Sequence record: OR670491.1
Reading direction: 5' to 3' (one strand)
DNA length: 64,000 nt
The position numbers and the translations under genes were made by a program. This document shows, piece by piece, positions 1,355 through 22,568 of the stretch; position 1 is the first letter of the stretch, and each line of letters starts with the position of its first letter. Under the pieces are notes generated by a model, which was not told the DNA's origin, did not search any database, and worked only from the letters and a program-made list of their open reading frames with translations.

Positions 1355-1358
1355 ATTA

Positions 1359-1431
1359 GACTCTGTAGTTCAGTTGGTAGAACGCTTCACTCATAATGAA
1401 GAAGTCGCTGGTTCAATCCCAGTACTGACCA
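1359..1431 (+). pseudogene. decayed tRNA (CAU)
   Basis: Intact D, anticodon (CTTCA-CTCATAA-TGAAG) and T arms, but the acceptor strands GACTCTG and ACTGACC do not pair. Confidence 0.7.
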
Positions 1432-1439
1432 CAAAAAAA

Positions 1440-3137
<1,698 letters not shown>

Positions 3138-3207
3138 AATATTCTCCTGAATTTTCTAAAAGTTATAATAATATTTAGTTACAATATTTATGATATAGAT
3201 TAAAAAG

Positions 3208-3236
3208 TTGAAATGTGTTCAAAAATGTGGTATAAT
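3208..3236 (+). promoter_or_regulatory. sigma-70-type promoter
   Basis: TTGAAA-17 bp-TATAAT with extended -10 TG. Confidence 0.65.
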
Positions 3237-3262
3237 ACCTCTGTTGTTCACGGAAAGATTAA

Positions 3263-3486
<224 letters not shown>

Positions 3487-3559
3487 CTTTTTAATTTAAA
3501 AGTACTTTACTGTAGTGTTTAGTATCGTATATTGTAATCAAAAGGATATAATAAAACTC

Positions 3560-4084
3560 ATGGAGAGAGTTGAAGAATGGCGTGATGTTGTTGGTTATGA
3601 AGACCATTTCCAAGTTAGTAACAAAGGTAGAATTTACAGCAAAAGAACAAATAAAATTTTAGTTCAAGGTACTAATAAAAAAGGTTATAAAGTATTAAGT
3701 ACTAGAATTGGTGGAAGAACTGGAGTATGTAAGTGTTTTAGGGTTCATATTTTAGTGGCTCAAGCATTTATATCAAATCCACATAATAAGCCCATTGTAA
3801 ACCATAAAGATGGCAATAAACAAAACAACGAAGACTGGAATTTAGAATGGTCTACATATAGTGAGAATACTAATCATGCTTATAAAAATGGTTTAACAAT
3901 ACCATTAAAAGGAACTGAACAAGTTCAATCCAAATTAACCGAAGATGATGTTAGATACATACGTTCAGTGTATAAACCATATGATAAAACATATGGTGCA
4001 TCTATGTTAGCAAAACAATTTGGTGTACATCATAGTTTAATATCGGATATAGCATCACATAAATCATGGAAGCATGTTAAGTAA
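3560..4084 (+). CDS. NUMOD4-HNH homing endonuclease
   Basis: NUMOD4 EEWRDVVGYEDHFQVSNKGRI and HNH RVHILVAQAF...VNHKDGNKQNNEDWNLEW; ATG at 3560 preferred over the track start at 3515. Confidence 0.9.
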   Translation: MERVEEWRDVVGYEDHFQVSNKGRIYSKRTNKILVQGTNKKGYKVLSTRIGGRTGVCKCFRVHILVAQAFISNPHNKPIVNHKDGNKQNNEDWNLEWSTYSENTNHAYKNGLTIPLKGTEQVQSKLTEDDVRYIRSVYKPYDKTYGASMLAKQFGVHHSLISDIASHKSWKHVK

Positions 4085-4103
4085 TAAAAAAACAGTACTG
4101 AAC

Positions 4104-4135
<32 letters not shown>

Positions 4136-4146
4136 CAAACATATTC

Positions 4147-4222
4147 GGCCCTGTATACAATCCAGGAATGTACTCTGCTCATAACAGATGTAAGGTCGGG
4201 GCAGCACCGACCAGGGCCACCA
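4147..4222 (+). tRNA. tRNA (CAU; Met or Ile2) with non-canonical T loop
   Basis: Perfect acceptor GGCCCTG/CAGGGCC plus ACCA; anticodon loop CTCATAA; T arm GTCGG-GGCAGCA-CCGAC. Confidence 0.7.
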
Positions 4223-4382
4223 ATTTTGGACACATTAATCTTCGATGGTAATGCTGGTTAATATCTTACGGCTGTAAAATGCAATACATTACATATTGCT
4301 TCAGGTACAGAGATATAAAGATTAATTAATAAGGTATCCTTATTTTGTCCAATCCTTAATAACTAGAAATGGTGGGAAAGAA

Positions 4383-5128
4383 ATGAAAGGTGTTTCAATT
4401 TTTTACGATTACCATGAACAAGGTTTACCACATCAGATTGCTGGAATCTATTCTACGTCTGATAAAACCGAAGAAGAGATGCGTACTGAATTATTGTCGC
4501 TAATTGGTGAGAGAAGTTTCCATGAACGTGATCAACCAATTTTCATTAACCACACACATTTGTATGCAAAAAGTTTGCTAGGTGAAGAACTTGATAAAAA
4601 GGTGGAATACACTTTGAAACAGTTCTTCCCAATCGCACTTGATGTAGTTGGTTTCAAATCATCGGATTTCAAGTTCATGTACTATGATGTTGAAGCATAT
4701 GAGTTCGCTTGGAACAATCGTTATCATAAACAATTACACCAATATCGTTTAGAACTTCAACATGAAGCGGCTGAAGCATATAAAGCAAAACGAGCAGCAC
4801 AGAAGCTTGAAGGTAACGTACAGAAATGATAGAATCTATCTTATGTGTACTGTTGCCAATTTTAGTAGTTGCTTTGATATGTCTTTATTATGGTTACAGT
4901 ACTGTAATTGATAAAAAGCAAGTTTACGTCATTACATTCAGTACTACACATATTGAGTTTGGTAATGTACATACCGGTATCACTTATATTGCATATCGTT
5001 GTAAGTACTTCCATAAGTTCAAATCTTATGATATGATCTATTACTGTGATGAATCCAACGTGAACCGTTATATTGACATAAACGATGAATCAAAAAAATC
5101 GTTTTACAGTTTTAAAGAATTAAAATAA
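4383..5128 (+). other. two hypothetical CDS (4383-4829; 4826-5128 with N-terminal TM)
   Basis: ORF track, ATGA overlap, phage-like codon usage. Confidence 0.7.
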
Positions 5129-5139
5129 ATGTAGACGGA

Positions 5140-5360
<221 letters not shown>

Positions 5361-5468
5361 AATATTGTTGCAACAGTATTCAGTACTACTTTTTAATTGA
5401 CACAACTTTGAATGAGGTGTATTATGTTCCAAGAAGAAAACTGGGGTTTTTAACATAAAGGGGAATGT

Positions 5469-5576
5469 ATGAAAGTGAGTAAAGAAACGGCTAAACAGCT
5501 TGAAGAACTTTGTTCAGCACAACCTATGCCTACACTTGCTTTAATCAAGTTAATGCGTCGAAATAAGCAAAAATAA
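5469..5576 (+). CDS. 35-aa basic microprotein
   Basis: MKVSKETAKQLEELCSAQPMPTLALIKLMRRNKQK with AAGGGG upstream; promoter TTGACA-17-TATTAT at 5397-5425. Confidence 0.5.
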   Translation: MKVSKETAKQLEELCSAQPMPTLALIKLMRRNKQK

Positions 5577-5659
5577 AAATGATAAATAATACAGTAAGAT
5601 GACCTCCCCTCAATACGAAAGAGTATGGAGACTTGTTGGTTATCTTACTTCTTAAATTA

Positions 5660-5732
5660 GCCTTCTTAACTCAGTTGGTAGAGTAATCGCCTTGTAAGCG
5701 ATAAGTCATCCGTTCAAGTCGGATAGAGGGCA
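5660..5732 (+). tRNA. tRNA-Thr (UGU) copy 1
   Basis: Canonical cloverleaf, ATCGC-CTTGTAA-GCGAT; no encoded CCA. Confidence 0.9.
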
Positions 5733-5734
5733 CA

Positions 5735-5816
<82 letters not shown>

Positions 5817-5828
5817 TAAAGGTGAACA

Positions 5829-6260
5829 ATGAAAATGAACATTGTAAAATTTGTTGATTATGTATTACAAAACGAAACATGGTCACTACACGATGTACAA
5901 GTAGAAGACGTTGGTGAAGTGCGTGTTTTTTGCTATGATCCAGAATTGAATGAAATCACTGATTTGAGTAAATGTTTTAATATTTTTATGGCTTATGAAC
6001 TCAATAAGAAGTTTTATTCAATTGATATGTATTTGAACACTGTTACATTTAGAATTTCTGAATATGATAATTTTAATGAAGATTATTATATTGATGAAAG
6101 CATTGAATTTAATGTAGATGATATAGACACTGAAGAAAAATTCTTTCAGTACTCTCTTGTTAATGACACATTGGGCTTGACATTTGATGACGTTAAAGCT
6201 ATACTTAAAGTTCAGAAATTGATTCCTGAAGATGTCCAAAATCCCTTACGTGAAGAATAA
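5829..6260 (+). CDS. hypothetical protein, FQxS-motif family
   Basis: TEEKFFQYSLVND motif. Confidence 0.8.
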   Translation: MKMNIVKFVDYVLQNETWSLHDVQVEDVGEVRVFCYDPELNEITDLSKCFNIFMAYELNKKFYSIDMYLNTVTFRISEYDNFNEDYYIDESIEFNVDDIDTEEKFFQYSLVNDTLGLTFDDVKAILKVQKLIPEDVQNPLREE

Positions 6261-6273
6261 TCTGGAGATATAA

Positions 6274-6468
6274 ATGTTTTTGAATTTACTAACTGTGTTT
6301 GGACGTACCTTACTATTAGCAGTAATTCATACACCTGGTATCACGAAGTTAGTTTCTTATAAGTTCAAAGAAGATTTACATAATGGTACTGAAAAGTATC
6401 TTCGTAAATTGAATAAAGATTTAGGTGTTAAAGAAACAACACCATTCAAGAAGTATAGTGACGATTAA
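6274..6468 (+). CDS. hypothetical protein
   Basis: 64 aa, GGAG RBS. Confidence 0.6.
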   Translation: MFLNLLTVFGRTLLLAVIHTPGITKLVSYKFKEDLHNGTEKYLRKLNKDLGVKETTPFKKYSDD

Positions 6469-6507
6469 AATATATTACCGAATAATTCAGTACTGGATAT
6501 GCTGTAC

Positions 6508-6636
6508 TGATAGCTTCTAGCCAGTACTGGATTCCTCCTTTTTCACTAGAAGCTGTCACTTATTCATACGTTTGTTACCCTCATAGCACTCGTTGTTTCA
6601 AAAGGTATCTTATTACCCCCCTCTCGTAAGATACTT
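6508..6636 (+). ncRNA. candidate sRNA with C-rich loops
   Basis: 13-bp stem 6508-6520/6546-6558 with loop containing TTCCTCCTTT; 10-bp stem 6603-6612/6627-6636 with loop TTACCCCCCTCTCG. Confidence 0.4.
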
Positions 6637-6678
6637 GAATTTAGTAGTTGACTTTTCAACTTCTTATATGTTATACTT

Positions 6679-6713
6679 AGGCTGAATCAAATGATTCGGC
6701 CTTTTTCTTTTTT
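6679..6713 (+). terminator. intrinsic terminator overlapping the start site of a promoter
   Basis: AGGCTGAATC-AAAT-GATTCGGCCT plus T tract; promoter TTGACT(6648)-18-TATACT(6672) lies just upstream. Confidence 0.7.
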
Positions 6714-6726
6714 AGGAGTGCTTTTA

Positions 6727-9267
6727 ATGAATTTCAGTACTACAAAAGAAGCGATAGCACATGCAACAGTTTCTATGTGTAAAGCCATTGCAGATGGAAA
6801 TTTTAACAAGGATATATACTACCAATTAAACGAACAACAAGTTGATATTAATTGTTATAATGAAAACGGTATGTGTACTTCATACGATAAAGCCAGTAAT
6901 ATCTTCTTTATGATCCGAGAGTTACCAAATGAACAATTATGTAAGTTCTATGCTGAAATTGATATGTATAAGAACTATATTAATTTCCAATTCTTGGATA
7001 TAGATCTATTTCGATTGGATATCACTTCTGATATGTTAAACCTAACAGAAGAAATGTTTTTCCAAATGAGCTTAGTTTACGATTTTAAGTACTTCGAATA
7101 TGAAACATTACGTAAGATATTTCAAGTAGCGGGGACTCTACATGAATAATAAGATTCTCAAGAAAATTTTAGATAGGACTGATATCTTCATTAAAGGTAG
7201 TGATGAAAATTACAACGTTCTGCATGATGGTGATATCGATACGCACATCTCATCTTATCTAAACAACTACCGTTGTAGTGTAAGTTATTGTAATAATATA
7301 GTTTTCGTAACAACATCTGAAACATTAGGATCGATTGGTTGGATTGACATTTTGGAGGATGGATTCACTTATGAAAATGAAGTCCTGGATTATACACTTG
7401 AATTCTACGACATTCAGGACTATAATTTAACAGAAGATGTGTACTTCCAGTTGAGTACTATCTATGATTTTGATATCATCGAATTTGAAGATTTGAAGAG
7501 AATCTTTAAGATTTGTGATTTTTTAAAAGGGAACCGAAATGAATCGACAATCGTTGCCTAAAGAGCATGAGGACAACATCCTAAAGCGTTTGGATGAGAT
7601 CACCAACACCCCATTAAGTGTTCTGGAAGCGAACTACGATGCCAAATTCAAGCAGTTCTTGTTCAACAATAGTGAATGGTGGTACAGTACTCCAGAATTG
7701 GTTTGTGCTGTTAATGTGGGCGTAGGTGAGTATGAGTATGCTATTCACTATAACCAGAAGAACATAAGCATCATTGTTGATGAAATTGCAGAGTCTGATA
7801 AATGGCGTGATGATAACAGTATCTTAAGTATGGCTTTGAATTACAAAAATGATTCTGAATACTTTCAAGATAGTACTATCAAAGAGATTGAAGTATCTTA
7901 TAATGTAATAGAAAAGATGCGTGAATTTTGTTTGTACATACTAAAAGTGACAGAGGATCTCCAATGCAAGCATCCGAGATGAGAAAACTGATTGAGAAAG
8001 AACATGGTAGTGTTGAGAATTTGGCTACAAAGATCATTGAAAGCCTTAAATTTGATGAATACCATAAGAGACTTGCACACAATGTTATTGGTGTTTCAAA
8101 AAGAGCCACCATTCTATATTTTCCTCGTTTACAAGAATATAACTTAGAATCAAACACAGATGGAACATTCTTTCAGGTGTACCGAAAAGAAGGTGAAGAC
8201 CGTGTAAGAATGTCATTACAACTTCCCGCCTCTTACACATACAGAGTTAATGATATTGAAGAGTCATGCAAGACTGAAGAAGAATTCTTTCAGGTTAGTT
8301 TGTTTCATGACTTGATCTTTTCTTATGAGTTCTTTAAAGAAGTCGAGTACTTGTTTAACTTGGCTGCCGAAAAACTGAAAAAAGATATGGAAAATTGAGA
8401 TGTTTTGTCTAACTGATGATATAATTAAAGAAGTTGTAGATATACTGAATAACCCTGGTACATTCACTAAATCCACTGAGTTGATTACTGAATTTCGTGA
8501 TGGGTGCTCTTATTACACAAACAATAACAGTACATGCGTGAGTCTTAACCTATCGGATGGGACTGGGGCGTTAATGCACCGTTACAGTACTCCGTTAGAT
8601 GGTGTACAATTTTCTTTTTCATTGATTGATAAAGAGTACAGTCTATTCTGTGATGATTATGAGAGTCTCAATGACCTGTATCTTGATTCTAAAATGTACT
8701 TCTCCGAAGAAGAACACTTCATGGATAGTACAGTTGAAAATCTAACAATTCCTTACACTATTATGGAAGAATTCAATACATTTTGCAGGAACTACGCAAA
8801 TGCATGACTTATATGAAGATATTAATGATGTTATTGATGTAGCATTATGGACTGTTTTCGAATACAGAACAGAAAACAAACACTGGTCTAATTGGTATAC
8901 TAATGATAACCAAAAACTACTGCTAGGTCATGGTAATACCGTTGAGTGTCTTGCATTCACTCGTCATGGGGCAAGTGATGATATAAGGGATTGTTTTAAT
9001 ATACAAATATCACTACTTGGACAAGGTGTGTTGTATAAGATTGATGTTTATCATGATCGTTTATTTGTAGTGTCTGGTAGTGCTACCCGCATTGTATTAG
9101 GTTATGACATGAACCCAAGTGAAGCGGATTTGTTTATTGGTGATTTCGATAAAGACATTGATTGTGCAAGATACTTTCAATTAAGTACTTTGTATAGTTT
9201 ATGTAATATTAGTCATCGTGGATTAAAGAAGTTACAAAGTATTGCACGAAATTTAAATTCTGAATAA
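6727..9267 (+). other. tandem cluster of six FQxS-motif family CDS
   Basis: 6727-7149 (TEEMFFQMSLVYD), 7142-7561 (TEDVYFQLSTIYD), 7539-7982 (DSEYFQDSTIKE), 7964-8398 (TEEEFFQVSLFHD), 8400-8807 (SEEEHFMDSTVEN), 8800-9267 (CARYFQLSTLYS). Confidence 0.8.
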
Positions 9268-9279
9268 CAGGAGAATATT

Positions 9280-11927
9280 ATGAGTTTTAATGGTAACATT
9301 GCAAAAGTACTTATTGTGTTTGAAAACTGTGAGTCCTTTTATGTTGAACAAAAAGACATTCTATGGATGCACATTGGTGATATTAAAACTAAAGTGTTTC
9401 GCTATTCTAATGTACTTAGTATCGAAAATGTAGCTGGACAGTTTGGAATTGCACTACGCAAAGAAATTGAAACCGAATTTTGGGGAAATCAAACATTACT
9501 TAATCGTTTGGATATGCGTGATGTTACGAACATTACTCTATATGACGTTAACAATGAGAGCGTCTCTTATGTTGTTGAGTGGGCTGATTATAGCGATCAA
9601 CAAACGTCAATCAATCAACGTACTTTCGTGACACCCGATGGCAATGTTGTATTCGTCAGTACTACATCTGCTTTAGTGGATGTTGATGTTGAACGTATTG
9701 ATTTCAACGCTCAGTACATGTCTTGACAACAGTATGTGCACGCTGTATAATGTGCACATATTAACTTAATGGGTATTTAAAAATGAGTACAGTAAAAATC
9801 AATGTACACTTTCTTGATTCATGGAAAGATGTTTGTACTGGTGTTAGTGAAGTAGAATACAGTACTGAAACTATCCACGCGGAAGATAAATGGCAAGCTG
9901 AATCACAGTTAGAAAAACTAAAAGAAACAGTAGGAACATCAGTTTCTGCTGGAACTGAGCATACACGTAAAATCATTGGTATTGATGAAATTGCACAGGT
10001 TCAGGTATTCTTGACGAACGAACAAATGATGAAGTTCATTCTTGACAACAATGTGGAACTTGCATTGGATGGTTCAGTATGGCAGAAAACTGACGGTACA
10101 AAAGTACGAGTGAAGTACCGTGTTACCATCAATGGAACTGCTATGTGTGGCATGGATTTGGAAGATGCAATCAATTACTACGTAAACAACATAAGAGGAA
10201 AAAAATGCTAACAGTTATATTGTGTACCTTGATGTGTTGTGTTACAATTATCATATGCCGATTGATCAATAACGCCTCTTTGGAAAAAGCATTTGAGCAT
10301 GAGAGAAATCTTAAAGAGTTGGAGAACCCATCACCAATTAAGAAACAAAAGTCTCCATATTCATTACGTAGGGTGTTGCATTCCAAATCAAAAAAATGGG
10401 GATATTGTCTTTTGGAGGGTGGTGGCATCTACACATCAGTTGATGGATACTACGAAGTGAATTATGATATCAAAGAAGCAATTGAGCTTTTGTGGACTAT
10501 GGAGGATTTAGGTAATTATGAGCGTACTAAGTTTGAATTCTTACAAGATGATCCAGGAACTTCATGAAAAACATGCTATAATTGTAGATGTAGAAAAGCA
10601 GGAAGTTGTGATGAAGAAGAAAGCCTATCAGATTCTGGATAACTTCCGCTCTAAAGCATTCATCATGAAGTTGTGTGCTGACGAGCATTTAGTAGGAAGA
10701 TTTTTATACAAGGAGTAACACAACATGAACATGAGTAAAACTATTCAGTACTTGAGTTCAAATTTCAGCAAAATTATCACCAGAGGTGGAATGATTGTCC
10801 ACCCTGAAACTGATGAAATGTATATTGTCCGTTTCGATGCAAGTTCTTATGATCAAGTACTTGTGGTTTCTAAGATGGTAGGGTATAATGAAGTTATTCA
10901 ATTCTGTTGTACAGAATTTGGAATCTACATTAAAGATTCGGATACTAACACAATTTCACATTATTTTTATCACACGTTGATGGGTACTAAAGACTTTGGT
11001 CTTAAATTCGATGATTTAGTACAATGTCACTATATGTTCAAAACCTACCCAGCATCTGGGAACTAAGGAGTTACAAATATGTCTAACATTTTCTTCAAAT
11101 CCGTTTCTTTCAATAAAGCTGCTTACTCTTACTCTTATGTAGAAGGACGAGTACTGAACATTGTTGTTGATGGTGTACCACTATCTGTCCATTTTCAATC
11201 AAACGCTGAAGCCATTGACGGACTAAAAGAACTTACTGACCTTTTGAATGGCGAACGTGCGACCAATCAAGACACAGTGAAAACAAATCCACTTGACGAC
11301 CTCGTTAACAAAATGAAAAGTGGTAAAGTACTGAATATCTTGAACGAATGTAATGAAAAACTAAGCGGTGTTCTGGAACGTACAAAAGACACTGTAAGTG
11401 ATAAAGTAAGTGACGCAGCTTACCGTCACATTACCAGTGCAATTGAAGAACGTGCACGTCAACTATTCACTGACGTTGAAGACCGTCTTAAAGATTTAAA
11501 AGATAATCTACCTGATATTGAAGACGTTCTTAACCAGGCATTTAGCACTGAAGAACAACCAAAACAAGAACAAGAACAACCTAAACCAAAACCAACTGTT
11601 AAGACTAAACGTAGCTTCGGTACAGTTGAAGATGTATTTGGTTTTGAAGTAACTTCAACTAAAGAAGTTAAGAAAGAAGCAGTGGATACTTCTGAAGTTC
11701 TAATTGGTGATATGCGTCCATCTGAACTACGTGCAGCAATCGATGTATTTGTAAATGATATTACCAGTACTGAACGTGCACAATCCATGTTCAATAGTAT
11801 CATTTCTAACTTCGATAAAGAAACTGCCGATGAAGCGATGCAAGCATTCAAAGAACTAATCTACAATGTTGCAATCCAACATGAAGATAAAACACTAGAA
11901 CAAGTTCTACGTGAAAACTTCCAATAA
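9280..11927 (+). other. six hypothetical CDS
   Basis: 9280-9726, 9783-10211, 10205-10567 (N-terminal TM), 10548-10718, 10725-11066, 11079-11927 (helical, acidic); promoter TTGACA...TATAAT at about 9723-9751. Confidence 0.7.
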
Positions 11928-11936
11928 TTGAAAAAG

Positions 11937-11962
11937 AAAAAGCCTCCATATGGAGGCTTTTT
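11937..11962. terminator. bidirectional intrinsic terminator
   Basis: AAAAGCCTCC-ATAT-GGAGGCTTTTT between convergent genes. Confidence 0.85.
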
Positions 11963-11964
11963 TA

Positions 11965-13122
11965 TTATGCAGTATAACCAACAATGACGATGGATGAATC
12001 AAACGGCTCTACAGATCGTACTGTAACGTTGTCATCAGCATCTAGTTCAATCTCACATAGTACTGTATGATTCATATCATCATATACTTGTACTTGTGGA
12101 TATAACTTACCATGTGTTGCTTTAGGTATACTTAGTGTATACATCATTTCAGAATCAACTACCCAATCACTTGAAAGTATTTCATCGAAGTAAGGTGTAG
12201 TCTGGATTGTTTTACCAATTACGCTCAAAGAGATTGGTTCATTATCACTTTGATATACAGTGATATTACCACTTGCATCTACATTGATATCAACACCAAT
12301 GAGAAAATCATTTGCGTTGTAAGCTTGTAGTACTAGATGATCGCCACGGTCATGCACGACTTCAGGTAGGACCGCTTTATATAGCCCATCACTTACGAAA
12401 TCAAACTGTGCCAGTGCGATGTTCGTCACAAATCCAATATCCTCACCTGATTCCAACACGTCAAACTCAACTGTTTTAGTATTGTATATATCGGAAGTAA
12501 GTATTACAGTTCCCTTACCTTGTTGTGTAATAGCATCAACAGGAATGCTAAACACGTCATCGATAATTTCAGTAGTAAAGTATTCAGTACCGTCAGGTAG
12601 GATTACTGTGATTTTCATACCAGTAGTATCAATCACTTCACCTGCGTTAAACAAGCGACCACCAACCAAATCGTCACCAACAAACACTGGGAACATAATG
12701 ATGTTATCAATGTCATGGTCTACAATCCCACATTCAGGGACGTACATATCATATAGAGTGGTTGAGCTACCTAGAATTGTTTTATGTAAGAGGAACTTAT
12801 AAACGAACCCGTTTGGATCAGTACTAAGATTTTGTTCAGTATGGCCTCGAATGAAGAAAGAGTTTTTCTTAATTTCACTGAGTAGTTGATCATTGGTTTT
12901 ATTGTAGTTAAGCTGATACCCATTCGTATCAGTTGTTGTTAGTTGTACTTTGCGATAGATAACGTTAGTTTTTGGATCTAGAATATCGTATAGTCTGTGG
13001 CTTCGTTGACGATAGATTCTCATGTTCTTGAGCTTCGTACCATCTTGTAAATACACACCATCAACAATATACCCACATTCACCAAACTTATAACGTCCAG
13101 CAGCAGCAATTGACCTTGACAT
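11965..13122 (-). CDS. putative late/structural protein with two C-terminal beta-rich repeats
   Basis: Start at ATG 13122 (MSRSIAAAG) with GGAGGGAG RBS and TAAATA-CGT-TATAAT upstream; duplicated H...QxY(N/D)....(I/L)..D..(G/D)N(I/V)TV domain. Confidence 0.55.
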   Translation of the reverse strand: MSRSIAAAGRYKFGECGYIVDGVYLQDGTKLKNMRIYRQRSHRLYDILDPKTNVIYRKVQLTTTDTNGYQLNYNKTNDQLLSEIKKNSFFIRGHTEQNLSTDPNGFVYKFLLHKTILGSSTTLYDMYVPECGIVDHDIDNIIMFPVFVGDDLVGGRLFNAGEVIDTTGMKITVILPDGTEYFTTEIIDDVFSIPVDAITQQGKGTVILTSDIYNTKTVEFDVLESGEDIGFVTNIALAQFDFVSDGLYKAVLPEVVHDRGDHLVLQAYNANDFLIGVDINVDASGNITVYQSDNEPISLSVIGKTIQTTPYFDEILSSDWVVDSEMMYTLSIPKATHGKLYPQVQVYDDMNHTVLCEIELDADDNVTVRSVEPFDSSIVIVGYTA

Positions 13123-13238
13123 TACTCCCTCCATTGGTATAATAATTATAACGTATTTATTCCAGTTCATAAAAAATAGCACTTGACCACTAGTGATATT
13201 TGTTGTATTATTACGTGGAATATTGATAAGGGGATACC

Positions 13239-13823
13239 ATGAGTGTTTTAGAAAAACGTCTAGTAATCAGAGACAACAAAATGATTGTTAAGCTAAACAA
13301 AGATGAGGCTGATTCTTTTCTGGCTAAGGCCATTGAGAAATCAGAGAGATACAAAGTACTAGCACCGGATAACAAATCTCCATATGGTTTTAACCACATA
13401 CATGGTCACTTTGTTGGTATGGTATGTGAGCACGCGTCATTCGTTCTTTTTAATGAAATCGAAAATTCAACGGGTATTAAACTCAACATTGACCCTGCAT
13501 TCCAAAGTGATGGTCGTGATGGTGAATGTGATATTCTTGTTAACAACCTACGTATTGAAGTAAAAGGTATTAAGTACAAATCATGGAAAGACTTCGGTCC
13601 ATGTGTTAGTACTCGACAATTGAAAAATATTCAGAAAAAAGCTGACGTGGTTCTATGGGTATTGTATAATGAGAAAAAGCAGGAGTTCTCATTTGAAGGA
13701 TTCAACTACGTCAAGGACATTAGTTCAGTACCAGTAGTATTGACAGGTGTACCAGGCCGTGTTATGATTGAGAACCATCCAGTACTAAGTATCATTAAAC
13801 CATTACAGGAGCTACCACTATGA
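13239..13823 (+). CDS. PD-(D/E)XK restriction-endonuclease-like protein
   Basis: E-helix (MVCEHAS) followed by DGECDILVNNLRIEVKG, matching the D-x(n)-E-x-K catalytic pattern. Confidence 0.6.
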   Translation: MSVLEKRLVIRDNKMIVKLNKDEADSFLAKAIEKSERYKVLAPDNKSPYGFNHIHGHFVGMVCEHASFVLFNEIENSTGIKLNIDPAFQSDGRDGECDILVNNLRIEVKGIKYKSWKDFGPCVSTRQLKNIQKKADVVLWVLYNEKKQEFSFEGFNYVKDISSVPVVLTGVPGRVMIENHPVLSIIKPLQELPL

Positions 13824-16800
13824 TTTGTGCAAACGTTTTTCAGGATACTGGTGACGAGTACAATACTAAACTTGGGTTTTTATCTTTCCCTGTTCTACCA
13901 CCCATCGGTGCAACATTAAATCTCACGATTAACGGACATGAAACTTATTTTAAAGTCATTGATATTGAGTACTGTGCTAAGTTGTACGAACGTATTCACG
14001 AATTGGCAATTCCAGTAGATATTGATATCATCGTTAAAGAGGATATTTAAATGTTTAAAAACTTTCTAGCTATTGCAGCAGTTGTTTTTCTGGTGAGTGC
14101 AGTTAGCAATCCTGTTTATGCTTCAGTTACTGAAGACACTACACCTACGCAGAAGATTAAAACTATCGGCACTGGAAAACAGCCACCTAAACGCAGTGCT
14201 GACGAGTATATCCCTGAGATGAGGGAGAACGCCAGACAGACTCGTGCTTTGCGTCAGAGCCGTGAAGATGCGTTATTCAGCCCTGAACAGCAACGTCTTC
14301 GTAAAAGCAAAGGTCATAAGTGGGATGTAGTGAAATCCCCATCATTCTGTGCTGGATATGCAAAAGTGAAGATGGAACAACACAACAACCAGTACTACCA
14401 GGATATGATTACATTCTATGATGCACGTATCTCGGATACAGATATGATGTCGGGAACTGTAGATCGTGAAAAGTTCCTTGCTGGCTATGACATGATTGAT
14501 GATAACAAAATCATGGAATGTGTTGAAGTATATGAGAAGTACAGAGGATTTGACGAATGATTTATCTCGTATTACTTTTTTCACCTTTAATATTCTTTGT
14601 TGTGTACAATATTATTATTGACACACGAAACTTCAAGTACACAGTAATTATCTGTAAGAACGAGGGATGGTCTAACTTCCTTAGAGTTCTCTGGGAATCT
14701 TACTTCATTGATAAAAGATTCGTGAGGTGTCCTGAATTTGATAAGTGGGAGTATAGTAACGCTAAACTATCATCTATTGAGTACATACTTAGACATTACT
14801 TGAGTTCAACTAAAGGTGTTACATTCGAGAAAGCATACCCTTATGATAGGTCGTATGTAAAATATCGTTTGGAATATCAAGATAAACTTGTTAAACTAGA
14901 GATGTACCACAAGGGTGTGTTTTGCTATGTATTTGACTATCTGGTGATCCCACCTTACCATGCACGATTGATTGAAGCAGCAATTAAAAAGAATGATAAA
15001 AATATTCTTGACATACTTTAAATAACCCAGTATACTAATCTCATAACGTAATCACTAGAGGATATAAAGATGGACGTATTAGCTACCCAATTCAAACGTA
15101 ATGCAGAACTTCGTGAAGGTTACATGAGTATTAGTGAAGTTGTTGAGAACAATTTTAAACAATACATCTTTAACTCGGCTATCAAGATTAAGCCTACTAA
15201 AGAATCACCAGACCGTAGCTTTACCAAATGGATCGCTTACTGGGAAGAATCCCCGATTGCAATCGAGATGACTGTAATTACTACAGTACTGGAAACTGGT
15301 TACGTTAAGGCAACCATCGTTGATAAGAAAGTGCGTACCTTAGAAGAAGTGGGTGAGTATCCTGCACGTAACTCTAAAGTATTTGGCTATCTGGTTGATT
15401 CTAAGTTTAAACTAGAAAAAGATGTCCGTGCATATGTGATGGATAAAGTACAGCAACTTTCTGACACACAACAACAATCACCTGCACCTGTTTCAAAAAG
15501 CGAAGCTGTGGACCAAGCAGCGATTGAACAAATCAAAAAGGCATGGGGTCTGAAATAATGTTCAGTTCACAAAACATTAAGTACATCTTCTTGTTTGGTA
15601 TTCTGTCATGGGTTATTCTTCCAGTACTAGATGTACTGGGAGTACCATCCGATAATAAAATTAATGAAATTTTCGGTTTATCATCTGCGTTTTTTGCTTT
15701 CGGTGTATTAGGTCTTGGTATATATATGGTTTTTGAGGGTTATGGTGATAAAGATGACCGACGCAGATTTTTCATGTTCATGTTTGGTAAGATGCATTAT
15801 AATTTCATCTTTACATTTAGTCTGATTCCGTGTATCATATATGCAGTGTGTTATGAATACTACGACTACGCAGGTTGGGGTCTTGAAGTGTTCTTGATTT
15901 TAGAATACATCAGGACTAAACAAAATGAATATGCATATTTGTATGCTATGATGAAAGTGAAGGAATGATAAAATGTATTCAAAAAATAAAACATTGTTTA
16001 TTGTTTATATTATTATTATCATTGATGCAATTAGTAATTACCTCACACTCAATAACATTGAAACATTTATCAATCCGATATGGTTCTGTATAAATCTTGG
16101 AGCACTTGCAGTATTCTCAGCGATTGCATTACTGGGATTGATTGCAGTGTATCTGATTGGTTTGAACGAAAATGACAGAGTTGATTTTGTTAAGGAATAC
16201 GGAACGAAATCATTATCAAAATTCGTTTGGGTTCTTCCATTATGTTTGCTTATAGTGTATGATGTTCAAATGCATTTATATGAATCAGCCGTAATTTTAA
16301 CACCTATCATGCTTATATATAACGCTTTCGTTAATGAGCACAGGTTAGCCATTAAAGAACACTTCATACGAATGGCTAAGATGGGAACCACTCAATTGAA
16401 TGAACAAGAGGATTGAACTAATGAACGTTGAACGTGTCCAAGAATTAGCAGCAGCATTACAGGCGAACGAAAACCAATGTCAAGAACTGCGTGATACTAT
16501 TAAAGTCGAGTACGCACGCTTACAGGGTCTTCTCCAGGAATCTAACTGGGTAGTAACCAAAGGTATCGAAGCAATCTATAAAGATATTGAATCCCTTTTC
16601 AACAAGAAGTCTAAGTTTGAATCCGATTCTTACAACAAACGTAAAGAACTAAATTCAGTACTGGGTGTCTAAAAAAAAAAGTACTTGACCAATTGAATAT
16701 CATGGAGTACATTGTGCTCCTACTTTAATGAAAAGCCAAAAGGAAATAAAATGAAATCTATTCTCGTTGCAGTTAACCTGGTTGCTTCCCCATCTTTCAA

Positions 16801-17436
16801 CTTCAAAAAAGTTGTTGCTGACAATCTGAAGAACATCTGCCCTAATGCTGAATTGACTTTCTGTGTATTCGATTCCGAGAAACTAACAACTGTTGATCTA
16901 AACTATCTCTTGAACGATGTACAAAGTATTTCTGGTGAAAGTAACTTCAATGTAGTTCAGGAAGTTGCAGACGAGTATGATGATACTTTGGTTATTTCGG
17001 AGAATTTCTAAATCCAATGCGAAGAATCATACAGTACTTAATCAGGAAATTATTTCGTTATGAAACGATAGAATATAAAGCTAATCTTGCATACCAAATT
17101 TACATAGCATTGTGTACTGGTGATTACGCTGTGTTGAATAAGTACTGTGCTTCTAAAGCAACTATTGATATAATGGCACTTCGTCTGTACGAGTGCCAGT
17201 TCTTTAGATACAATCATTATCAGTACAGATATGATGAAAAAGATTTCAATAGCATTGATATGCTAACGAAATTATGTAATAATAAAAAGAATATTCACAT
17301 ATCAGAATTCACCGCATTGTATTTTTATCTCAAGAGTTCATTATATATTAACTCTATGAAGAGATTCGATACTCGTGTTAATGCATTTGAAGGTAAAGAA
17401 TATGAGATATATGATAAATTTTTAGATAAGGTGTAA
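13820..17436 (+). other. nine hypothetical CDS
   Basis: 13820-14050, 14051-14560 (signal peptide), 14557-15021 (TM), 15070-15558, 15558-15968 and 15973-16416 (multi-TM), 16400-16672 (coiled coil), 16751-17011, 17017-17436. Confidence 0.7.
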
Positions 17437-17437
17437 T

Positions 17438-17935
17438 ATGACTACTGTTTATATTGATAAGCGTTTAGGCGTATTAATGACTGATTCAAGGGTGACAAGT
17501 ACTCGCCCACGAATTTTTTTGGGTATCTTCCCATTAAAAGAAAAAAACCACTACGGTGTTGTTTCACAGAAAACCTTGTATGTTCATGACCGTCTCTTCA
17601 GTGCAGCAGGATCAGTTTCTGAAATTGACAAAGTACTGAATTATTTAATTACTGGTGAAAAGGTAATTCCTTCCAAAAAGCTATCGTGCCATTGTGTGTT
17701 GTTATCTAAGGACTATTGTATTCATTTTGTCCTAGTAGACGGTAAGTTCGTTAAGAAGTTAGTTTTTCTACACAAGGACTACACGTTTTTTATGGGTAGT
17801 GGTGGTGAATATATGATTGACGCAGCTTGTCATGAGGACTATAGTACTCTCCAAGCTAAAGTACTGGATACTTTTATGAAAGTAAAAAATCATGATTGTT
17901 TCAGTGATGATAATATTAATGTATATCGTTTTTGA
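17438..17935 (+). CDS. HslV-like (Ntn-hydrolase) peptidase subunit
   Basis: N-terminal MTTV...LMTDSRVT and MGSGGEYM match HslV TTIV...AGDGQAT and IGSGGPYA. Confidence 0.65.
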   Translation: MTTVYIDKRLGVLMTDSRVTSTRPRIFLGIFPLKEKNHYGVVSQKTLYVHDRLFSAAGSVSEIDKVLNYLITGEKVIPSKKLSCHCVLLSKDYCIHFVLVDGKFVKKLVFLHKDYTFFMGSGGEYMIDAACHEDYSTLQAKVLDTFMKVKNHDCFSDDNINVYRF

Positions 17936-17957
17936 TTTTTTTCATTAGGAGCCGTAA

Positions 17958-18920
17958 TTGAAAAAGCTAGATCTAAATGCAATTGCTGATGAAGTACTGG
18001 ATGAATGTTTTGCTAGTGAAGAAGTCAACGTATTAGAGGCAATTGATGCCGTTGAAGAAGAACATGATGACCACAAGTTCGAGAAGCCTAACACTGGTAT
18101 CAGTTTGACTCGTCCTAAAGGTGTAACGAATGAAATGCTCATCCAGGAAGTACGTGATGGCATTAACGTTGAAAAGAACATTGATCTTCTGGTACGTTAC
18201 AACTACCCAATGATTGTTAGTACTGCTCGTAAATGTACATGTTTCATCCCATTTGAAGATAAGATTTCATATGGTGTTGAAGGTTTAATGCGAGCGATTC
18301 ATACATTCGATCCTACCAAGAACGTTAAGTTCATTACCTATGCAACAACAACAGTGTATATGACAATCTATAACGAAAGTGCAGACGCTAACTACCTAGT
18401 GCACTTCCCACGTTATATGAGTGTTAACAACATTTATGTGAAACGTTGTGTAGAAGCGTACCAAAAGAAATATGGTAGGTTCCCAACTCCAGAGATGGTC
18501 GCTGAAGAGACTGGTATTGAGATTCAACACGTTAAGAATTGTCTAACCTACACCAATACTTATATGGCATTGGATATGAAATTGAGTACTGATTCAGAAA
18601 GTACCTTGTCTGACATTGTTACTACAGTTGATCCTGATTACAACTTAGGTGCAGAAACTATCAGTATCCCACTGGTACAAAGTATTGCAGATATGATGCA
18701 TAATCTATCTGAAAAAGACCGTGAGTTGATTGAACGTGTACATGGTATTGGTTCAGCACAAGAACCAGAAACGCTACGAGAAATCATTGAGAGCGGTTTT
18801 GAAGATGAGAAGGGTAAAGTCATTACTGCTCGTTCTTCCTTGCACCGTAAGTACTCTGACGCAATGGAACGCCTACGTAAGATGGTGAAGTCCAGAGGTT
18901 ATGAGTTCGAAGATTTTTAA
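17958..18920 (+). CDS. phage-encoded sigma-70-family RNA polymerase sigma factor
   Basis: Region 2 NYPMIVSTARK...GVEGLMRAIHTFDPTKNVKFITYAT, region 3 GRFPTPEMVAEETG, region 4 LSEKDRELIERVHGIG...TLREI. Confidence 0.85.
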   Translation: MKKLDLNAIADEVLDECFASEEVNVLEAIDAVEEEHDDHKFEKPNTGISLTRPKGVTNEMLIQEVRDGINVEKNIDLLVRYNYPMIVSTARKCTCFIPFEDKISYGVEGLMRAIHTFDPTKNVKFITYATTTVYMTIYNESADANYLVHFPRYMSVNNIYVKRCVEAYQKKYGRFPTPEMVAEETGIEIQHVKNCLTYTNTYMALDMKLSTDSESTLSDIVTTVDPDYNLGAETISIPLVQSIADMMHNLSEKDRELIERVHGIGSAQEPETLREIIESGFEDEKGKVITARSSLHRKYSDAMERLRKMVKSRGYEFEDF

Positions 18921-18927
18921 GATTAAA

Positions 18928-18954
18928 GGGTTGACTTCGGTCAACCCTTTTTTT
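18928..18954 (+). terminator. GGGTTGAC-TTCG-GTCAACCC terminator (cassette copy)
   Basis: Perfect 8-bp stem, cUUCGg loop, T7 tract. Confidence 0.9.
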
Positions 18955-18985
18955 ATGGGACAAATTCGTAAATGGTGATACAATG

Positions 18986-19480
18986 ATCTATGCACAACCA
19001 CAATGACAGTACTTGTACTGATAATCTTCCCTAATTCACTTGAAAACGTAAAGGATAGATGAGCTTTTCATTGTAGCGAACAGCAAAAGAAACCCGTTAG
19101 ATGTGGGCATAGTTTGAACCCCTCACGGCAATGCGGCTGTATAAAGAACCACGTTAGGATGGCTGGTGGTTCCTCGATAGACATATAAGGATAACACCTT
19201 ACGAATTATCTAAGGGAGAGTTATCAGATTTTGTACAATATAGTTGCGTCCAAAATTTGAGTACTCACATTAAGTATTTGATTGCATAGATACTTAATGA
19301 AGATACACTATGTTTAAAAGTGTAGACCGTCATATGAAACTGAAGTAGAGAGAAACAGGATGATCCGCTTTCGTGCTCTTTAAGAGTAATCTTCAATGCA
19401 ATAGCTCTGATACCATCAGCGTCAAATTCCCCTCTGTGTGGGGGGGGAAGAAAAATCCCTTTCTCAAATCCCGTCAATAT
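18986..19480 (+). ncRNA. candidate long structured non-coding RNA or regulatory region
   Basis: About 500 bp without a credible ORF; several stems (GAACCAC/GTGGTTC, CATTAAGTAT/ATACTTAATG, TTCCCCTC/GGGGGGAA). Confidence 0.35.
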
Positions 19481-19582
19481 TATAAAGTCCTTGACAGTTA
19501 TTATACATTCGCGTAAGATACGTAGTATCAGAAGCGAACAGACATCTCGAAGAGATGGATGATTAACATTAAGGAACATCTA

Positions 19583-22568
19583 ATGAATTCAACAATCTTC
19601 TTAGTAGCAGCTCTTTCAATGCAAAGCGGTGTACAAATCACTCCAATGAATTCCATGAATCAATGTATTTCTGTTCGTGATAGTACCTACGAACAGGTCA
19701 ATAAAAATATCTGGATGTCTATTGACAAAGAACAGATGTGGTGTTATAACAGTAATACAAAAGTTAAACTGTTTGTTGGTGAGAAAGAATAATAGTTGAC
19801 ACGTAAGAAGTTCTAGAGTATAATTTCTACATTGAGTACTGAACTAAATCATTAATTAATCAAGAGGGTTTATCATGCAAGTTATCGTTCTTATCGTTGG
19901 TATCGTACTGGGTGTTTATGGTCATTCCTGGATGCAGGAGAAGTTTCCTAATACTCGTCCAGACTTCTGTAGCACTACGGTGAGTTCTGAACTATCTAAA
20001 GATAGCAAAGATAGCATTGGTACTAAACTGGATAAAGTACTGAACGTAATTAACGAGTGAGGTAAGTTGTAATGTTTATTCCTAATAATTCTAAAATTGG
20101 AACACAAGTACAACTTCTAGAAGATGTAAGTACTTGCAGTGGTACTTTCACTAAAGGTCACATCTTAACTATCACAGGTGAAACCGAGCGTGGTTATGAT
20201 TTGGAAGATGCTGATGGTAATCGTATCTTAGAAGCAGGGTTTAGTCGTTTTGTTGAAGTGGATAGTACTGACCAGAAAGAAACAGAAGGTCATTGTTTTG
20301 ATTACCAAGAAGTCAACTCAAAATGTATCTGTGGTGAAATTTATAGTAAATGGGATTGACATAGTATAGAAATACTATATAATGTTTATATCAAATGAAA
20401 TTCACTTTAACCAACGATAGGAAAATATTATGTCTTTAACCAAAGAAGAACGTGACCTTATTGAAAAAGCAATCTGGTTTTATGCAAATGAAAGCCAGTG
20501 CAGTGATGAAGAAGCACGTGAACTGTGCAACCACCTTAGACAGAAACAAGAACTGAAAGTGTATCGTATACGTGCTGTGGATGATGGGGATCGTATTGTT
20601 CTAGCGGAAACAAAAGAAGAAGCAGAACAAATCTTCACTGATAATAACGAAAATCCACATTACATGGAAGAAGTCTGTGAAGTGAAAAAAGGTACTTATA
20701 TCGATTGACAGTACTGAATAATAGCAGTATAATGTTTATATCAAAGGGAATGCAGTGAAAGGAAAGACAGCATAATCGTACTCGTCACTGCGTTTCCACC
20801 CTTTTAAATTAAATGAGGAATTAATTATGTTTCAAACTAACACTCAAGGTTTTGTAATCATCGATCTGAATAAAAACAGCGGTCATTGGATGAAACCTAC
20901 TGACGCATGTATGCAGTTTGATTTCTTAGGTTATAAAATCAGTGTAAGCACTGGTGGTTCAGTACTGCGTGGTGGTTGTATCGTTGAACATCTCGTCACT
21001 GATCCTGAAGGCCGCGAATACGAAATCGCAGGTTCAGTACAAGATGCTATCATGTTCGTGTGTCAGCGTGAAATGAATGGCAGTAACAGCAACGCACTGA
21101 CAAACGCATTATCACAAGAAGTGGAGGTTCGTTAATGAAATATATTGTTTTAGTAGTAATGGCGTTTTTACTGAGTGCTTGTGATGCAAGTACGAAAGAC
21201 CGAACCAGTGAATTCCTTCTCCCTACTGAGTTAAAGGATGCTGGGTGTAAGATTTACCGTATGCGTCAGGAAGGTGATGGTGCAACTTTGTACACAGTTT
21301 ACTGCCCTAATGCTAATACCAGTACATCTTTCCGTACAGGAAAGACAACCGTACATGCATCTGTCATCAATGGTGAATAACATGGGATTGGACACAACTA
21401 AAGCCCAAGAACTACATAAGCGAGCAATGGATGAAGAGTTTTTAGCAAACATTCGCTATAAGATGGAGAAGCTATATCGTAGTGCTGAAATCTTAGAAGA
21501 CAAAAAACCTTCCATGACTACAAAATATTTCAATATCACTAACGACATTTGTTATAGTCCAGGTGAAATTTGGATTGAGTGGGAGTCTTGGACAGGGGAT
21601 ATTCTTCGTGTGCAAGGTTATTGTGTTCAATACGCTTTCGACGGTAATTCTAAATCACTGAAGGTACTATGTACTAATACGAATGATGTAGTGGATGTCA
21701 ACTTACATTGTATTAAATGGGTTGACTTTGGAGATGTAGATGAATAAAATTAAATTCATTGTACTTATGGTTCTCATGTGTGTTTCACTCACTGGGTGTG
21801 ATGAAGACCTTTCAGCTAAAACATTAGCTCGCTGGAACTGTAAGATGACTGGTGAGAAGTTCAAAACAGTCGAAAGTGTTTGTGTTGGTGAAGGTAGAAG
21901 CCGCTGCGACAAAATGGTTGACCATGAAGTGGAATTGTTTGTATATGATTGTCCAACAAAGGGTCGAGTACTGAGTAAAAGTGAGTTAATTTATAATTGA
22001 CAGTACACCACAAAAGGGATACAATGTATCCCTACTTTAATCGAAGAGGCTAACAAATGACTACTAATGAAATGCTGAAAGCAATCTGGGATAAAGGTTA
22101 TGAACTGAAAGTAACCAGTACTGAGATTCGCGTATTCAAGACTGAGTACTGTGAATATCTGGATTTAGATACTTATAACAGTATTGTCGTTGAGCAACAC
22201 AAAGGCAATGTTACTGAAAGTATTGATTCAGTACTTAAACGTTCTTTAGCTATCGTTGGTGCTTAAAATGAATTCAGATTTACAGAAGATGATTGGATTT
22301 GGTATTTCTGTGTTTTTTGTTATGATTTCTTTTGCAATTTTCATCCCTAAACTATTTCATTAAGAGGTGTATTATGATTTCTTTATATGTTGCTGTTATG
22401 CTCACTCATGGACAAATCGACCGCACCGTAGGTAAAGGTGTTTACACTACAGCAGATGAATGTTACACTGCTACTGCTTGGCCTCAAGATGAAGGTTCAA
22501 GTAATGAATTCAAATGTCTCAAAGTTAAAGGTGACTTTGTTAATCTTAAGGTTGTTGAGGCCAAATAA
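19583..22568 (+). other. run of small early genes behind several sigma-70 promoters
   Basis: 19583-19792, 19875-20060, 20072-20359, 20430-20708, 20827-21135, 21135-21380 (lipobox LLSAC), 21382-21747, 21740-22000 (lipobox SLTGC), 22057-22266, 22268-22363 (31-aa TM, not in track), 22374-22568; promoters include 19491-19519, 20705-20733 and about 21997-22025. Confidence 0.7.

Follow-up and report, generated by a model that had tools for sequence, protein, structure and literature searches.

The genome of the Escherichia coli jumbo phage vB_EcoM_JNE01 (Asteriusvirus; OR670491.1, 355,583 bp) encodes, within the 64,000-nucleotide stretch analyzed here (the window, whose coordinates are those of the record minus 248,000), a 320-amino-acid protein of the sigma-70 family that, judging from its sequence, is very probably a working promoter-specificity factor. 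The model that best accommodates the data, which we regard as about evenly balanced between right and wrong, is a cascade in which host sigma-70 would serve the early promoters (classes A and B below), the phage sigma a middle class, M, and a homologue of gp55 the late class, L. According to this model, the host sigma-70 holoenzyme would transcribe the sigma gene early, as the last gene of an early-region operon; the product would displace sigma-70 on the host core RNA polymerase and steer the enzyme to class M promoters, which would drive genes of replication, recombination and nucleotide metabolism, the gp55-like late sigma gene and a small family of non-coding RNAs, one of them immediately after the sigma gene; the gp55 homologue would then transcribe the late genes from xTAAATA. 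The sigma gene itself is of an ordinary kind, one already known and annotated in phages. Three elements, all computational, appear to be new relative to the searchable literature: the residue-level reading of the protein, the definition of class M by its rigid spacing in Asteriusvirus and its covariation with the sigma across clades.

The first-pass annotation of the window, made from the letters alone, described the gene as a full-length sigma-70-like factor with rewired promoter-recognition residues. The open reading frame (ORF) is real and intact, and that observation is confirmed. The JNE01 record differs from those of the orthologues in leaving it as a 'hypothetical protein' (WOL22956.1), whereas records of sister phages call it 'RNA polymerase sigma factor' and variously RpoS, RpoD or FliA. 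One of these sisters, Turkey5, which is 98.6% identical to JNE01 over window positions 17000-20000 (megablast), was used for the genome-wide promoter analysis. The gene and its parts are as follows.

17947..17951, plus strand: Shine-Dalgarno sequence AGGAG, 6 nucleotides from the TTG start; the MKKLDLN N-terminus that this start gives is common to all orthologues in the alignments
17958..18920, plus strand: sigma-70-family gene, 320 amino acids, TTG start; Pfam regions 2 and 3 above cut-off, PHROG 351 at E 6e-47
17958..18107, plus strand: acidic N-terminal extension, amino acids 1-50, predicted to be disordered, with a nearly invariant motif in residues 1-18 and no region 1.1/1.2 match
18189..18377, plus strand: sigma2, amino acids 78-140 (Pfam, alignments), including N82 (RpoD N383) and the core-binding helix 99-118
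18327..18374, plus strand: region 2.3/2.4 block K124-N139, equivalent to RpoD K426-R441, with W433T, W434T, R436Y, Q437M, T440Y and R441N and with Y430 kept
18405..18431, plus strand: equivalent of region 3.0, FPRYMSVNN, in which RpoD H455 becomes Y153 and E458 becomes V156 (alignment)
18438..18626, plus strand: sigma3, amino acids 161-223 (Pfam)
18651..18893, plus strand: sigma4, amino acids 232-312; no Pfam region-4 match, predicted fold similar to 1ku7_A (TM 0.69) and 3hug_E (TM 0.76)
18801..18824, plus strand: 8-amino-acid insertion EDEKGKVI in the turn of the region-4.2 helix-turn-helix, family-wide D-x-K-G-K
18825..18887, plus strand: putative -35 recognition helix with R292 (equivalent to R584), S293, S294, H296 (R588 position) and R297 (Q589 position)

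Membership in the sigma-70 family is supported by Pfam matches above the cut-offs to PF04542 (Sigma70_r2; 36.8 bits, cut-off 24) and PF04539 (Sigma70_r3; 45.6 bits, cut-off 25.3), by a profile-profile alignment (hhalign, probability 99.1%) that covers residues 377-576 of RpoD, and by PHROG 351 (sigma factor; E 6.4e-47, residues 1-317), the only PHROG that the ORF matches. An AlphaFold2 model based on 26 family members (mean predicted local distance difference test score, pLDDT, 70) displays sigma2 at 58-147, sigma3 at 156-197, a linker and sigma4 at 232-312, and the top Foldseek matches in the PDB are sigma-S and the SigA and SigB chains of mycobacterial holoenzymes, with 260-280 aligned columns. 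The description as full-length thus holds for regions 2, 3 and 4 but not for the N-terminus: the 320-amino-acid protein has no Pfam match to Sigma70_r1_1 or Sigma70_r1_2 (region 1.1/1.2), and its first 50 residues form a family-specific acidic tail (15 D/E versus 4 K/R), of which residues 1-49 are modeled with low confidence. This layout (sigma2, sigma3 and sigma4, with neither region 1.1 nor the Trp dyad) is that of group 3 sigma factors, a resemblance in architecture only. The specific names given in sister records are unsupported, with all NCBIfam sigma models scoring far below their cut-offs: RpoD_Cterm, the best, reaches 92.2 bits versus 354, rpoS_proteo 84.8 versus 378.7, SigBFG 68.9 versus 234, and FliA_WhiG, which bears on the 'FliA' annotation in WPEC3, 63.4 versus 189.6. 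Nor is the protein of the T4 gp55 type (PHROG 234/12791); it matches PHROG 351 only, and the gp55 homologue is a different gene.

The residues that would read the promoter are aligned with confidence in sigma2. BLASTP against E. coli K-12 RpoD (E 3e-17) places phage K124-N139 opposite RpoD K426-R441 without gaps, and the register of region 2.3/2.4 is the same in phmmer alignments to PDB sigma chains and in the hhalign alignment of the family profile. The five substitutions noted originally (W433T, W434T, Q437M, T440Y, R441N) are exact, and there is a further one, R436Y, that had been missed; where RpoD and RpoS have the signature Y-A-T-W-W-I-R-Q-A-I-T-R, the phage protein reads Y-A-T-T-T-V-Y-M-T-I-Y-N. 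Lost, then, are the Trp wedge and the readers of -12 and -13, and the region-3.0 readers of the extended -10 TG are changed (H455Y, E458V). Kept are F419, E420 (as D), R423 (as K), K426, F427, T429, Y430 and N383. In structures of sigma-A and sigma-70 these retained residues build the pockets for the flipped -11A and -7T, and the base-capture machinery therefore appears to have been preserved. Loss of the Trp dyad is the norm among alternative (group 3/4) sigma factors, so that 'rewired' describes an ordinary alternative sigma rather than an oddity.

In sigma4, MAFFT alignment with RpoD identified the insertion of about 8 residues that had been seen by eye as EDEKGKVI, which occupies residues 282-289 and separates the two helices of the region-4 helix-turn-helix motif. 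It likewise set T-A-R-S-S-L-H-R-K opposite T-R-E-R-I-R-Q, as proposed, an equivalence that rests on MAFFT and the predicted structure. In the putative recognition helix R584 is kept as R292, and the other changes are E585S, R586S, R588H (H296) and Q589R (R297). The Pfam search of the 320-amino-acid protein returned no region-4 match; the alignment to the NCBIfam RpoS model extends through residue 318. The AlphaFold2 model predicts a helix at 273-278, a short β bridge at 282/288 and a long helix at 292-312. A separate model of residues 224-320 (pLDDT 75.6) matches exclusively sigma4 domains, including region 4 of Taq sigma-A on -35 DNA, although for 3hug_E (TM 0.76) and 1ku7_A (TM 0.69) probabilities of 0.99-1.0 go with E-values of only 0.02-0.3. 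At the level of the predicted fold, then, this is a sigma4 domain with an atypical 8-residue insertion.

A word-indexed protein search recovered 26 close homologues, and an exhaustive profile search of 1.84 billion representatives yielded about 18 clusters at 50% identity that match near the whole profile length with E < 1e-44, beyond which the matches merge into generic sigma factors. By tblastn, the gene is present in phages of Asteriusvirus, RaK2/K64-1, GAP32, CBB, Erwinia phages, Serratia phage BF and Yersinia phage fHe-Yen9, and an orthologue was found in every RaK2-like phage tested; for one of the phages, Sharanji, GenBank gives the laboratory strain K-12 MG1655 as host. The orthologues CBB_513, GAP32_490, RaK2 ORF244, PBECO4 AGC35036 and Turkey5 XMR02002 (all PHROG 351) are the same gene, of about 300-330 amino acids and in the same early-region context, and identity to the RaK2-like jumbo-phage orthologues ranges from 31% to 99%. 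The JNE01 protein has the marks of this clade: similarity over the full length, the N-terminal MKKLDLN..DEVLDECF and the D-x-K-G-K insertion in region 4, which is present family-wide. Among 21 diverse family members the W433/W434 positions are never Trp; positions 436/437 are R-Q in most clades and Y-M in the Asteriusvirus and RaK2 clades. At position 441 most clades have R, whereas the Asteriusvirus/RaK2-like clades have N. In the close family F117, D118, K124, F125, T127 and Y128 (the -11A pocket), N82 and R292/H296/R297 are invariant or nearly so. The putative DNA-contact residues (Y-M..Y-N; R-S-S-x-H-R-K-Y) are the same in the JNE01 and PBECO4-type proteins despite an overall identity of only 57%. 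RaK2-like orthologues have been annotated as RNA polymerase sigma factors and proposed to override host transcription (PMC5259590; PMC7824862), and Iyer and colleagues noted that 'group 2' jumbo phages have a minimal sigma plus a complete RpoD-like sigma (PMC7824862). The searchable literature contained no experiments on this RaK2-like sigma family, and among public RNA data only wastewater and other metagenome runs contain this DNA, as contigs, with no infection time-course for these phages.

Candidate target promoters were sought in the Turkey5 genome (351 kb), which was assembled from eight annotated stretches and subjected to a dyad-motif search; this defined four promoter classes. Class M consists of an A-rich tract, T-[G/T/A]-G-A-C-A-A, 11 nucleotides and g-TG-A-TATAAT-g, with the spacer between hexamers fixed at 16 nucleotides; its short form is T-G-[G/A]-A-C-A-a, 13 nucleotides, TG-n-TATAAT. 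When the distance between [G/A]ACA and TGnTATAAT is varied from 9 to 18 nucleotides, the site counts in Turkey5 are 0, 6, 0, 0, 29, 2, 0, 1, 0 and 0. The weight matrix displays conservation also at positions that were not selected for, namely the upstream A-tract, T at the first hexamer position and G after TATAAT, with A after GACA in 23/29, G at -16 in 18/29 and A at -13 in 21/29. Among perfect promoters, TGn accompanies 9 of 22 with a 16-nucleotide spacer versus none of 15 with a 17-nucleotide spacer. Class M sites lie upstream of the genes for the sliding clamp, ssb, primase, topoisomerase and ClpP, of other middle-type genes and of the gp55-like gene. The same architecture and spacing characterize 'Promoter 1' of phage CBB (18 sites, Table S6), with TG[A/G]AA[C/T][G/A], which precedes replication genes and the gp55-like gene (PMC5259590), and are also seen in RaK2 (CTGAACA), Serratia phage BF and GAP32. 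The CBB '-35' heptamer TGAAACG itself occurs in the JNE01 window at 7 sites versus 7.7 expected, the Asteriusvirus element being different.

The variable parts of class M follow the type of sigma encoded by the phage. In the JNE01/Turkey5 and RaK2 sigmas the R441 position is occupied by N and the recognition helix reads R..H, and in these phages A dominates at -13, with G in 1/29 strict Turkey5 sites (1/36 in a looser tally) and 0/6 RaK2 sites. The sigmas of CBB, GAP32 and BF have R at the R441 position and the recognition helix K-A-T-L-S-R-R-Y, and here G occupies -13 in 10/18 CBB, 8/10 BF and 6/11 (hand-counted) GAP32 sites; for Turkey5 versus CBB the difference is significant (Fisher p = 7e-5). 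Arg with G and Asn with A would correspond to classical pairings. The -35-like element likewise reads TG[G/A]ACA where the helix has R..H and TG[A/G]AAC[G/A] where it has K..S. Cronobacter, the host of GAP32, belongs to the Enterobacteriaceae, as do Escherichia and Klebsiella, so that it is the phage, and not the family of the host, that the motif follows. Covariation of this kind is what would be expected if a phage-encoded protein reads class M.

The remaining classes have candidate factors of their own. Class A is the perfect sigma-70 consensus (40 sites in Turkey5), and class B comprises an A-tract, AGTACTTGCA, 17 nucleotides and TATAATG, in 21 near-identical copies before tiny ORFs at 0.6-19.5 kb of Turkey5; in Turkey5 as in CBB, promoters of the early type resemble the sigma-70 consensus. 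In Turkey5 the class B copies, a second early promoter family, span 614-19452, at the start of the record, and the right end of the JNE01 window holds the first copies (63085-63130 and 63539-63566), each with AGTACTTGCA, 17 nucleotides, TATAATGTTTTACATC and then a conserved 5' hairpin. Class L is xTAAATA, about 30-60 nucleotides upstream of the sheath, tube, major capsid, protease, baseplate and RCC1-like genes of Turkey5. It is similar to TATAAATA, the late promoter that gp55 recognizes in T4 (PMC5259590). Turkey5 has its own gp55 homologue at 187400-188239 (PHROG 12791, E 1e-150; PHROG 234, E 1e-16), beside homologues of gp47 and gp46, and the RaK2 annotation also names one. TAAATA-N3-TATAA, one of two motifs that had been suggested as targets of the sigma, is found at 9 exact minus-strand sites between 46.9 and 57.0 kb of the window; it belongs to the xTAAATA late class before structural genes and, with a separate gp55 homologue present, is discarded as a target. 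The other, an AGTACT-containing motif, is a genome-wide palindrome, mostly in coding DNA and at variable positions relative to -10 boxes, that does not qualify as a promoter element. AGTACT has 1001 copies in the 351 kb of Turkey5, about 8 times the roughly 120 predicted from base composition (an estimate), and the longer CAGTACTG has 53 sites in the window versus 0.9 expected (for example at 586, 20709, 32462, 48206 and 63543); 87% of its Turkey5 sites are in coding DNA, with a fairly even spread. Some copies of CAGTACTG overlap the -35 box or spacer of early promoters, and paired copies make terminator stems. The palindrome could be the site of a phage DNA-binding protein or a modification target.

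The neighborhood of the sigma gene is populated by the following signals.

15008..15036, plus strand: nearest strong upstream promoter of the sigma-70 type, TTGACA-17-TATACT (11/12), the probable start of the early operon that ends in the sigma gene
17817..17845, plus strand: weaker sigma-70-like site, TTGACG-17-TATAGT (10/12), within the HslV-like ORF and 113 nucleotides before the sigma start
18925..18950, plus strand: strong intrinsic terminator closing the sigma transcription unit, an 11-bp stem followed by a T run
18957..18984, plus strand: class-M-like promoter directly after the sigma terminator, GGGACA then TGA-TACAAT; same arrangement in PBECO4 and RaK2
18985..19560, plus strand: conserved non-coding segment, one of four paralogous copies, candidate structured RNA

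The window contains 12 perfect TTGACA-N16-18-TATAAT promoters, all on the plus strand, versus 0.16 expected. In CBB, the operon of the orthologue has an RpoD-like promoter, Porf_510, and the authors of that work placed the gene among early host-takeover genes (PMC5259590). From this context we infer that the sigma protein is made early by the host holoenzyme.

The non-coding segment is a candidate member of the regulon. The approximately 580 nucleotides that follow the class-M-like promoter contain no plus-strand ORF longer than 47 amino acids, and RaK2 has the same arrangement of promoter and gap after its sigma gene. The core of the segment is almost identical in JNE01 and PBECO4, though the adjacent sigma proteins share 57% identity. 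The Turkey5 genome has four paralogous versions of the segment, each preceded by a TGnTATAAT promoter (paralogues at 54037-54292, 108806-109193 and 192113-472). RNAalifold applied to six copies predicts 33 base pairs, 13 of them with compensatory double changes. Rfam gave only tRNAs for the whole window, and a permissive run on 18940-19620 (E up to 1) gave no match for the segment. The segment 18985-19560 is probably an undescribed structured phage RNA, and the 70-amino-acid minus-strand coding sequence annotated within it in JNE01 (19265-19477) is probably spurious.

Several considerations weigh against the proposed cascade. It is derived wholly from sequence: the analysis shows homology, fold, conservation, gene context, and the existence, rigid geometry and clade-specific variation of class M, whereas binding of the phage sigma to core, the timing of its expression and its link to class M are deduced. 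The covariation involves two sigma types and effectively a single evolutionary transition, and the same pattern would be expected of any other phage factor specific to a clade; A is still common at -13 in GAP32 (4/11 hand-counted sites). The core-binding residues Q406, E407 and N409 of region 2.2 are altered in the Asteriusvirus proteins, and the equivalence of the recognition helix is less secure than that of sigma2 because the hhalign alignment to RpoD ends at residue 576, exactly at the insertion, leaving MAFFT and the predicted structure. Finally, class M retains the canonical TATAAT even though the phage sigma is devoid of the residues with which sigma-70 reads -12, and it resembles good extended -10 promoters that sigma-70 alone could plausibly fire.

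This last point leads to an alternative that is unlikely but far from negligible, namely that the phage sigma is functional but class M is served by host sigma-70, which would treat its sites as extended -10 promoters of the ordinary type. The phage factor would then serve a small or diffuse set of promoters missed by our scans, or act only in certain states of the host, such as a shortage of sigma-70. Class M indeed combines a canonical TATAAT and the TGn extension with a GACA-containing -35 that in 9 of the 29 sites is a perfect TTGACA; a weak -35 offset by TGn is the compensation pattern expected of sigma-70 promoters, and it is the sigma-70 residues for TG and -12 (H455, E458, Q437, T440) that the phage protein has lost. 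Host recognition does not readily explain, however, why the -35-like element and the -13 base vary by phage clade although the sigma-70 of the hosts is essentially the same (GAP32 on Cronobacter as against the E. coli and Klebsiella phages), or why the spacing is a rigid 16 nucleotides while the sigma-70-type early promoters of the same genome use 16 and 17. The additional promoter set, too, was sought: inspection of 60 unclassified intergenic gaps of the sister genome, mostly terminators and pseudo-gaps, revealed no fifth class and no further unassigned motif.

Of the original interpretation, that the factor serves a non-host promoter class, the part that stands is a probably middle class, which would fit all the findings; both named motifs fall, and the suggestion of a dominant-negative sequester is unsupported. 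That the sigma is a late factor or co-factor reading xTAAATA or TAAATA-N3-TATAA we consider very unlikely. The motif is real, with its nine exact sites and its place before structural genes, but it matches the T4 octamer TATAAATA read by gp55, of which the phage has its own homologue beside gp47 and gp46; moreover, a single-element promoter requires neither sigma3 nor sigma4, both of which are conserved here, and the sigma gene lies in the early region. Very unlikely as well, and slightly more so, is a decoy that sequesters the core and shuts off host transcription without recognizing promoters. An acidic N-terminal tail that could mimic DNA, the missing Trp dyad for melting and the changes at several core contacts of region 2.2 would suit such a role. 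Against it, loss of the dyad is normal in alternative sigmas, a decoy has no need of conserved sigma3 and sigma4, and the DNA-contact positions are under purifying selection, changing only between clades and in step with the promoter motifs; the -11A pocket, N383 and the sigma4 recognition helix are conserved though the family has diverged to about 30% identity.

Comparison with characterized systems helps to place the proposed middle sigma. Its closest solved structures are group 2 sigmas (RpoS of E. coli and Pseudomonas, SigB of M. tuberculosis), with 7pp4_f the best by sequence (E 1e-17) and 5ipl_F by fold, from sigma2 to sigma4 (E 1e-11). Like these, it retains the -11A pocket residues and N383; unlike them, it has no W433/W434, is changed at 436, 437, 440, 441, H455 and E458, carries the 8-residue insertion in the region-4.2 helix-turn-helix and a different recognition helix, lacks a region 1.2 match and scores 85-92 bits in NCBIfam versus cut-offs of 354-379. 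Group 3 sigmas (FliA/WhiG, SigB/F/G) are alike in architecture, but the phage protein reaches the cut-off of no subfamily. In the Bacillus phage SPO1, with its succession of sigma-A, gp28 and gp33/34, a phage sigma made early takes the place of the primary host sigma on the host core and turns on middle genes, including the late factor (PMC13401047). The comparison with this middle sigma, gp28, is by role, the proposed logic being the same; gp28 is small and highly divergent, with a promoter unlike that of the host, whereas the JNE01 sigma keeps sigma2, sigma3 and sigma4 and its candidate promoter keeps TATAAT. The sigma-70-family factors gp36 of coliphage phiEco32 and gp47 of Salmonella phage 7-11 are also alike in role and are biochemically proven with E. 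coli core, while the role is only predicted here; their phages are small podoviruses, in which they serve middle/late or late genes through promoters unrelated to class M. The 7-11 factor has region 4 and reads the bipartite GTAAtg-(16)-aCTA, with a 16-nucleotide spacer (PMC8948821). That of phiEco32 differs from the JNE01 sigma in having no region 4 and a single-element promoter.

The phage is a distant relative of T4, with homologues of gp55, gp46, gp47, gp43 and gp41/61. Middle promoters of T4 keep a sigma-70-like -10 and differ upstream, and class M can be likened to them in both respects. Unlike in the MotA/AsiA system, class M has its upstream element in the -35 position, at a fixed distance, and the phage encodes a complete additional sigma, which suggests sigma replacement rather than sigma appropriation of the T4 style; in this T4 relative, the sigma would stand in for MotA/AsiA-mediated middle transcription. 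A more specific and tentative proposal, which we consider possible though more doubtful than the cascade itself, is that of a distinct sigma lineage in which TGnTATAAT with a rigid 16-nucleotide spacer is read without the Trp wedge or the TG and -12 readers of sigma-70, by Y153/V156 and N139 instead; in which a β-hairpin is inserted in the turn of the sigma4 helix-turn-helix; in which the -13 and -35 readouts co-evolved with the promoters from one phage genus to another (N with A, R with G); and whose regulon includes the hitherto undescribed four-copy structured RNA, one copy being hard-wired downstream of the sigma gene in three genera.

RaK2-like jumbo phages (Asteriusvirus, Alcyoneusvirus, Mimasvirus, Eneladusvirus), whose transcription program has to our knowledge never been examined by experiment, are under consideration as therapeutic agents against E. 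coli, Klebsiella and pathogens of plants. If true, the cascade would sort more than 550 genes, largely unannotated, by time of expression in a simple way. It would also supply a sigma/promoter pair that is orthogonal and usable with the E. coli core polymerase, and a natural example in which residues of a sigma and bases of its promoters have changed in concert (the R441 position with -13, the recognition helix with the -35 element).

Several observations concern the surroundings. The ORF directly upstream of the sigma gene (17438-17935, plus strand), which begins M-T-T-V, weakly matches the HslV family of peptidases (phrog_1040, E 2e-7), and in fEgEco12 it carries the annotation HslV-like protease subunit; a Pfam search of eight neighboring ORFs and one 'FleQ-like' ORF gave nothing useful, and PHROGs gave only this HslV hint. 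The terminator hairpin of the sigma gene (GGGTTGACTTCGGTCARCCC; 18925-18950) recurs in Asteriusvirus (Turkey5 317059 and 321727) and in CBB (Torf515/518/520). At the two Turkey5 sites, TTGACT in the stem of the GGGTTGACTTCGGTCARCCC hairpin is spaced as a -35 for TGCTATAAT right after the T run, and these would be fused terminator-promoter units. The exact T4 late octamer TATAAATA is depleted in the mostly early window (3 sites versus 11.8 expected). Window positions 46900-60000 hold, on the minus strand, an array of some 14 RCC1-repeat paralogues, each about 1.2 kb long ('regulator of chromosome condensation' or 'HERC1' in Turkey5); at least nine have the TAAATA-N3-TATAA late-type promoter, and several are separated by palindrome hairpins of the CAGTACTG type. 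Lastly, the tRNA cluster at 1165-1423 and 5660-5812 (plus strand; five Rfam tRNA matches) lies among promoters with CAGTACTG just upstream of the -10.

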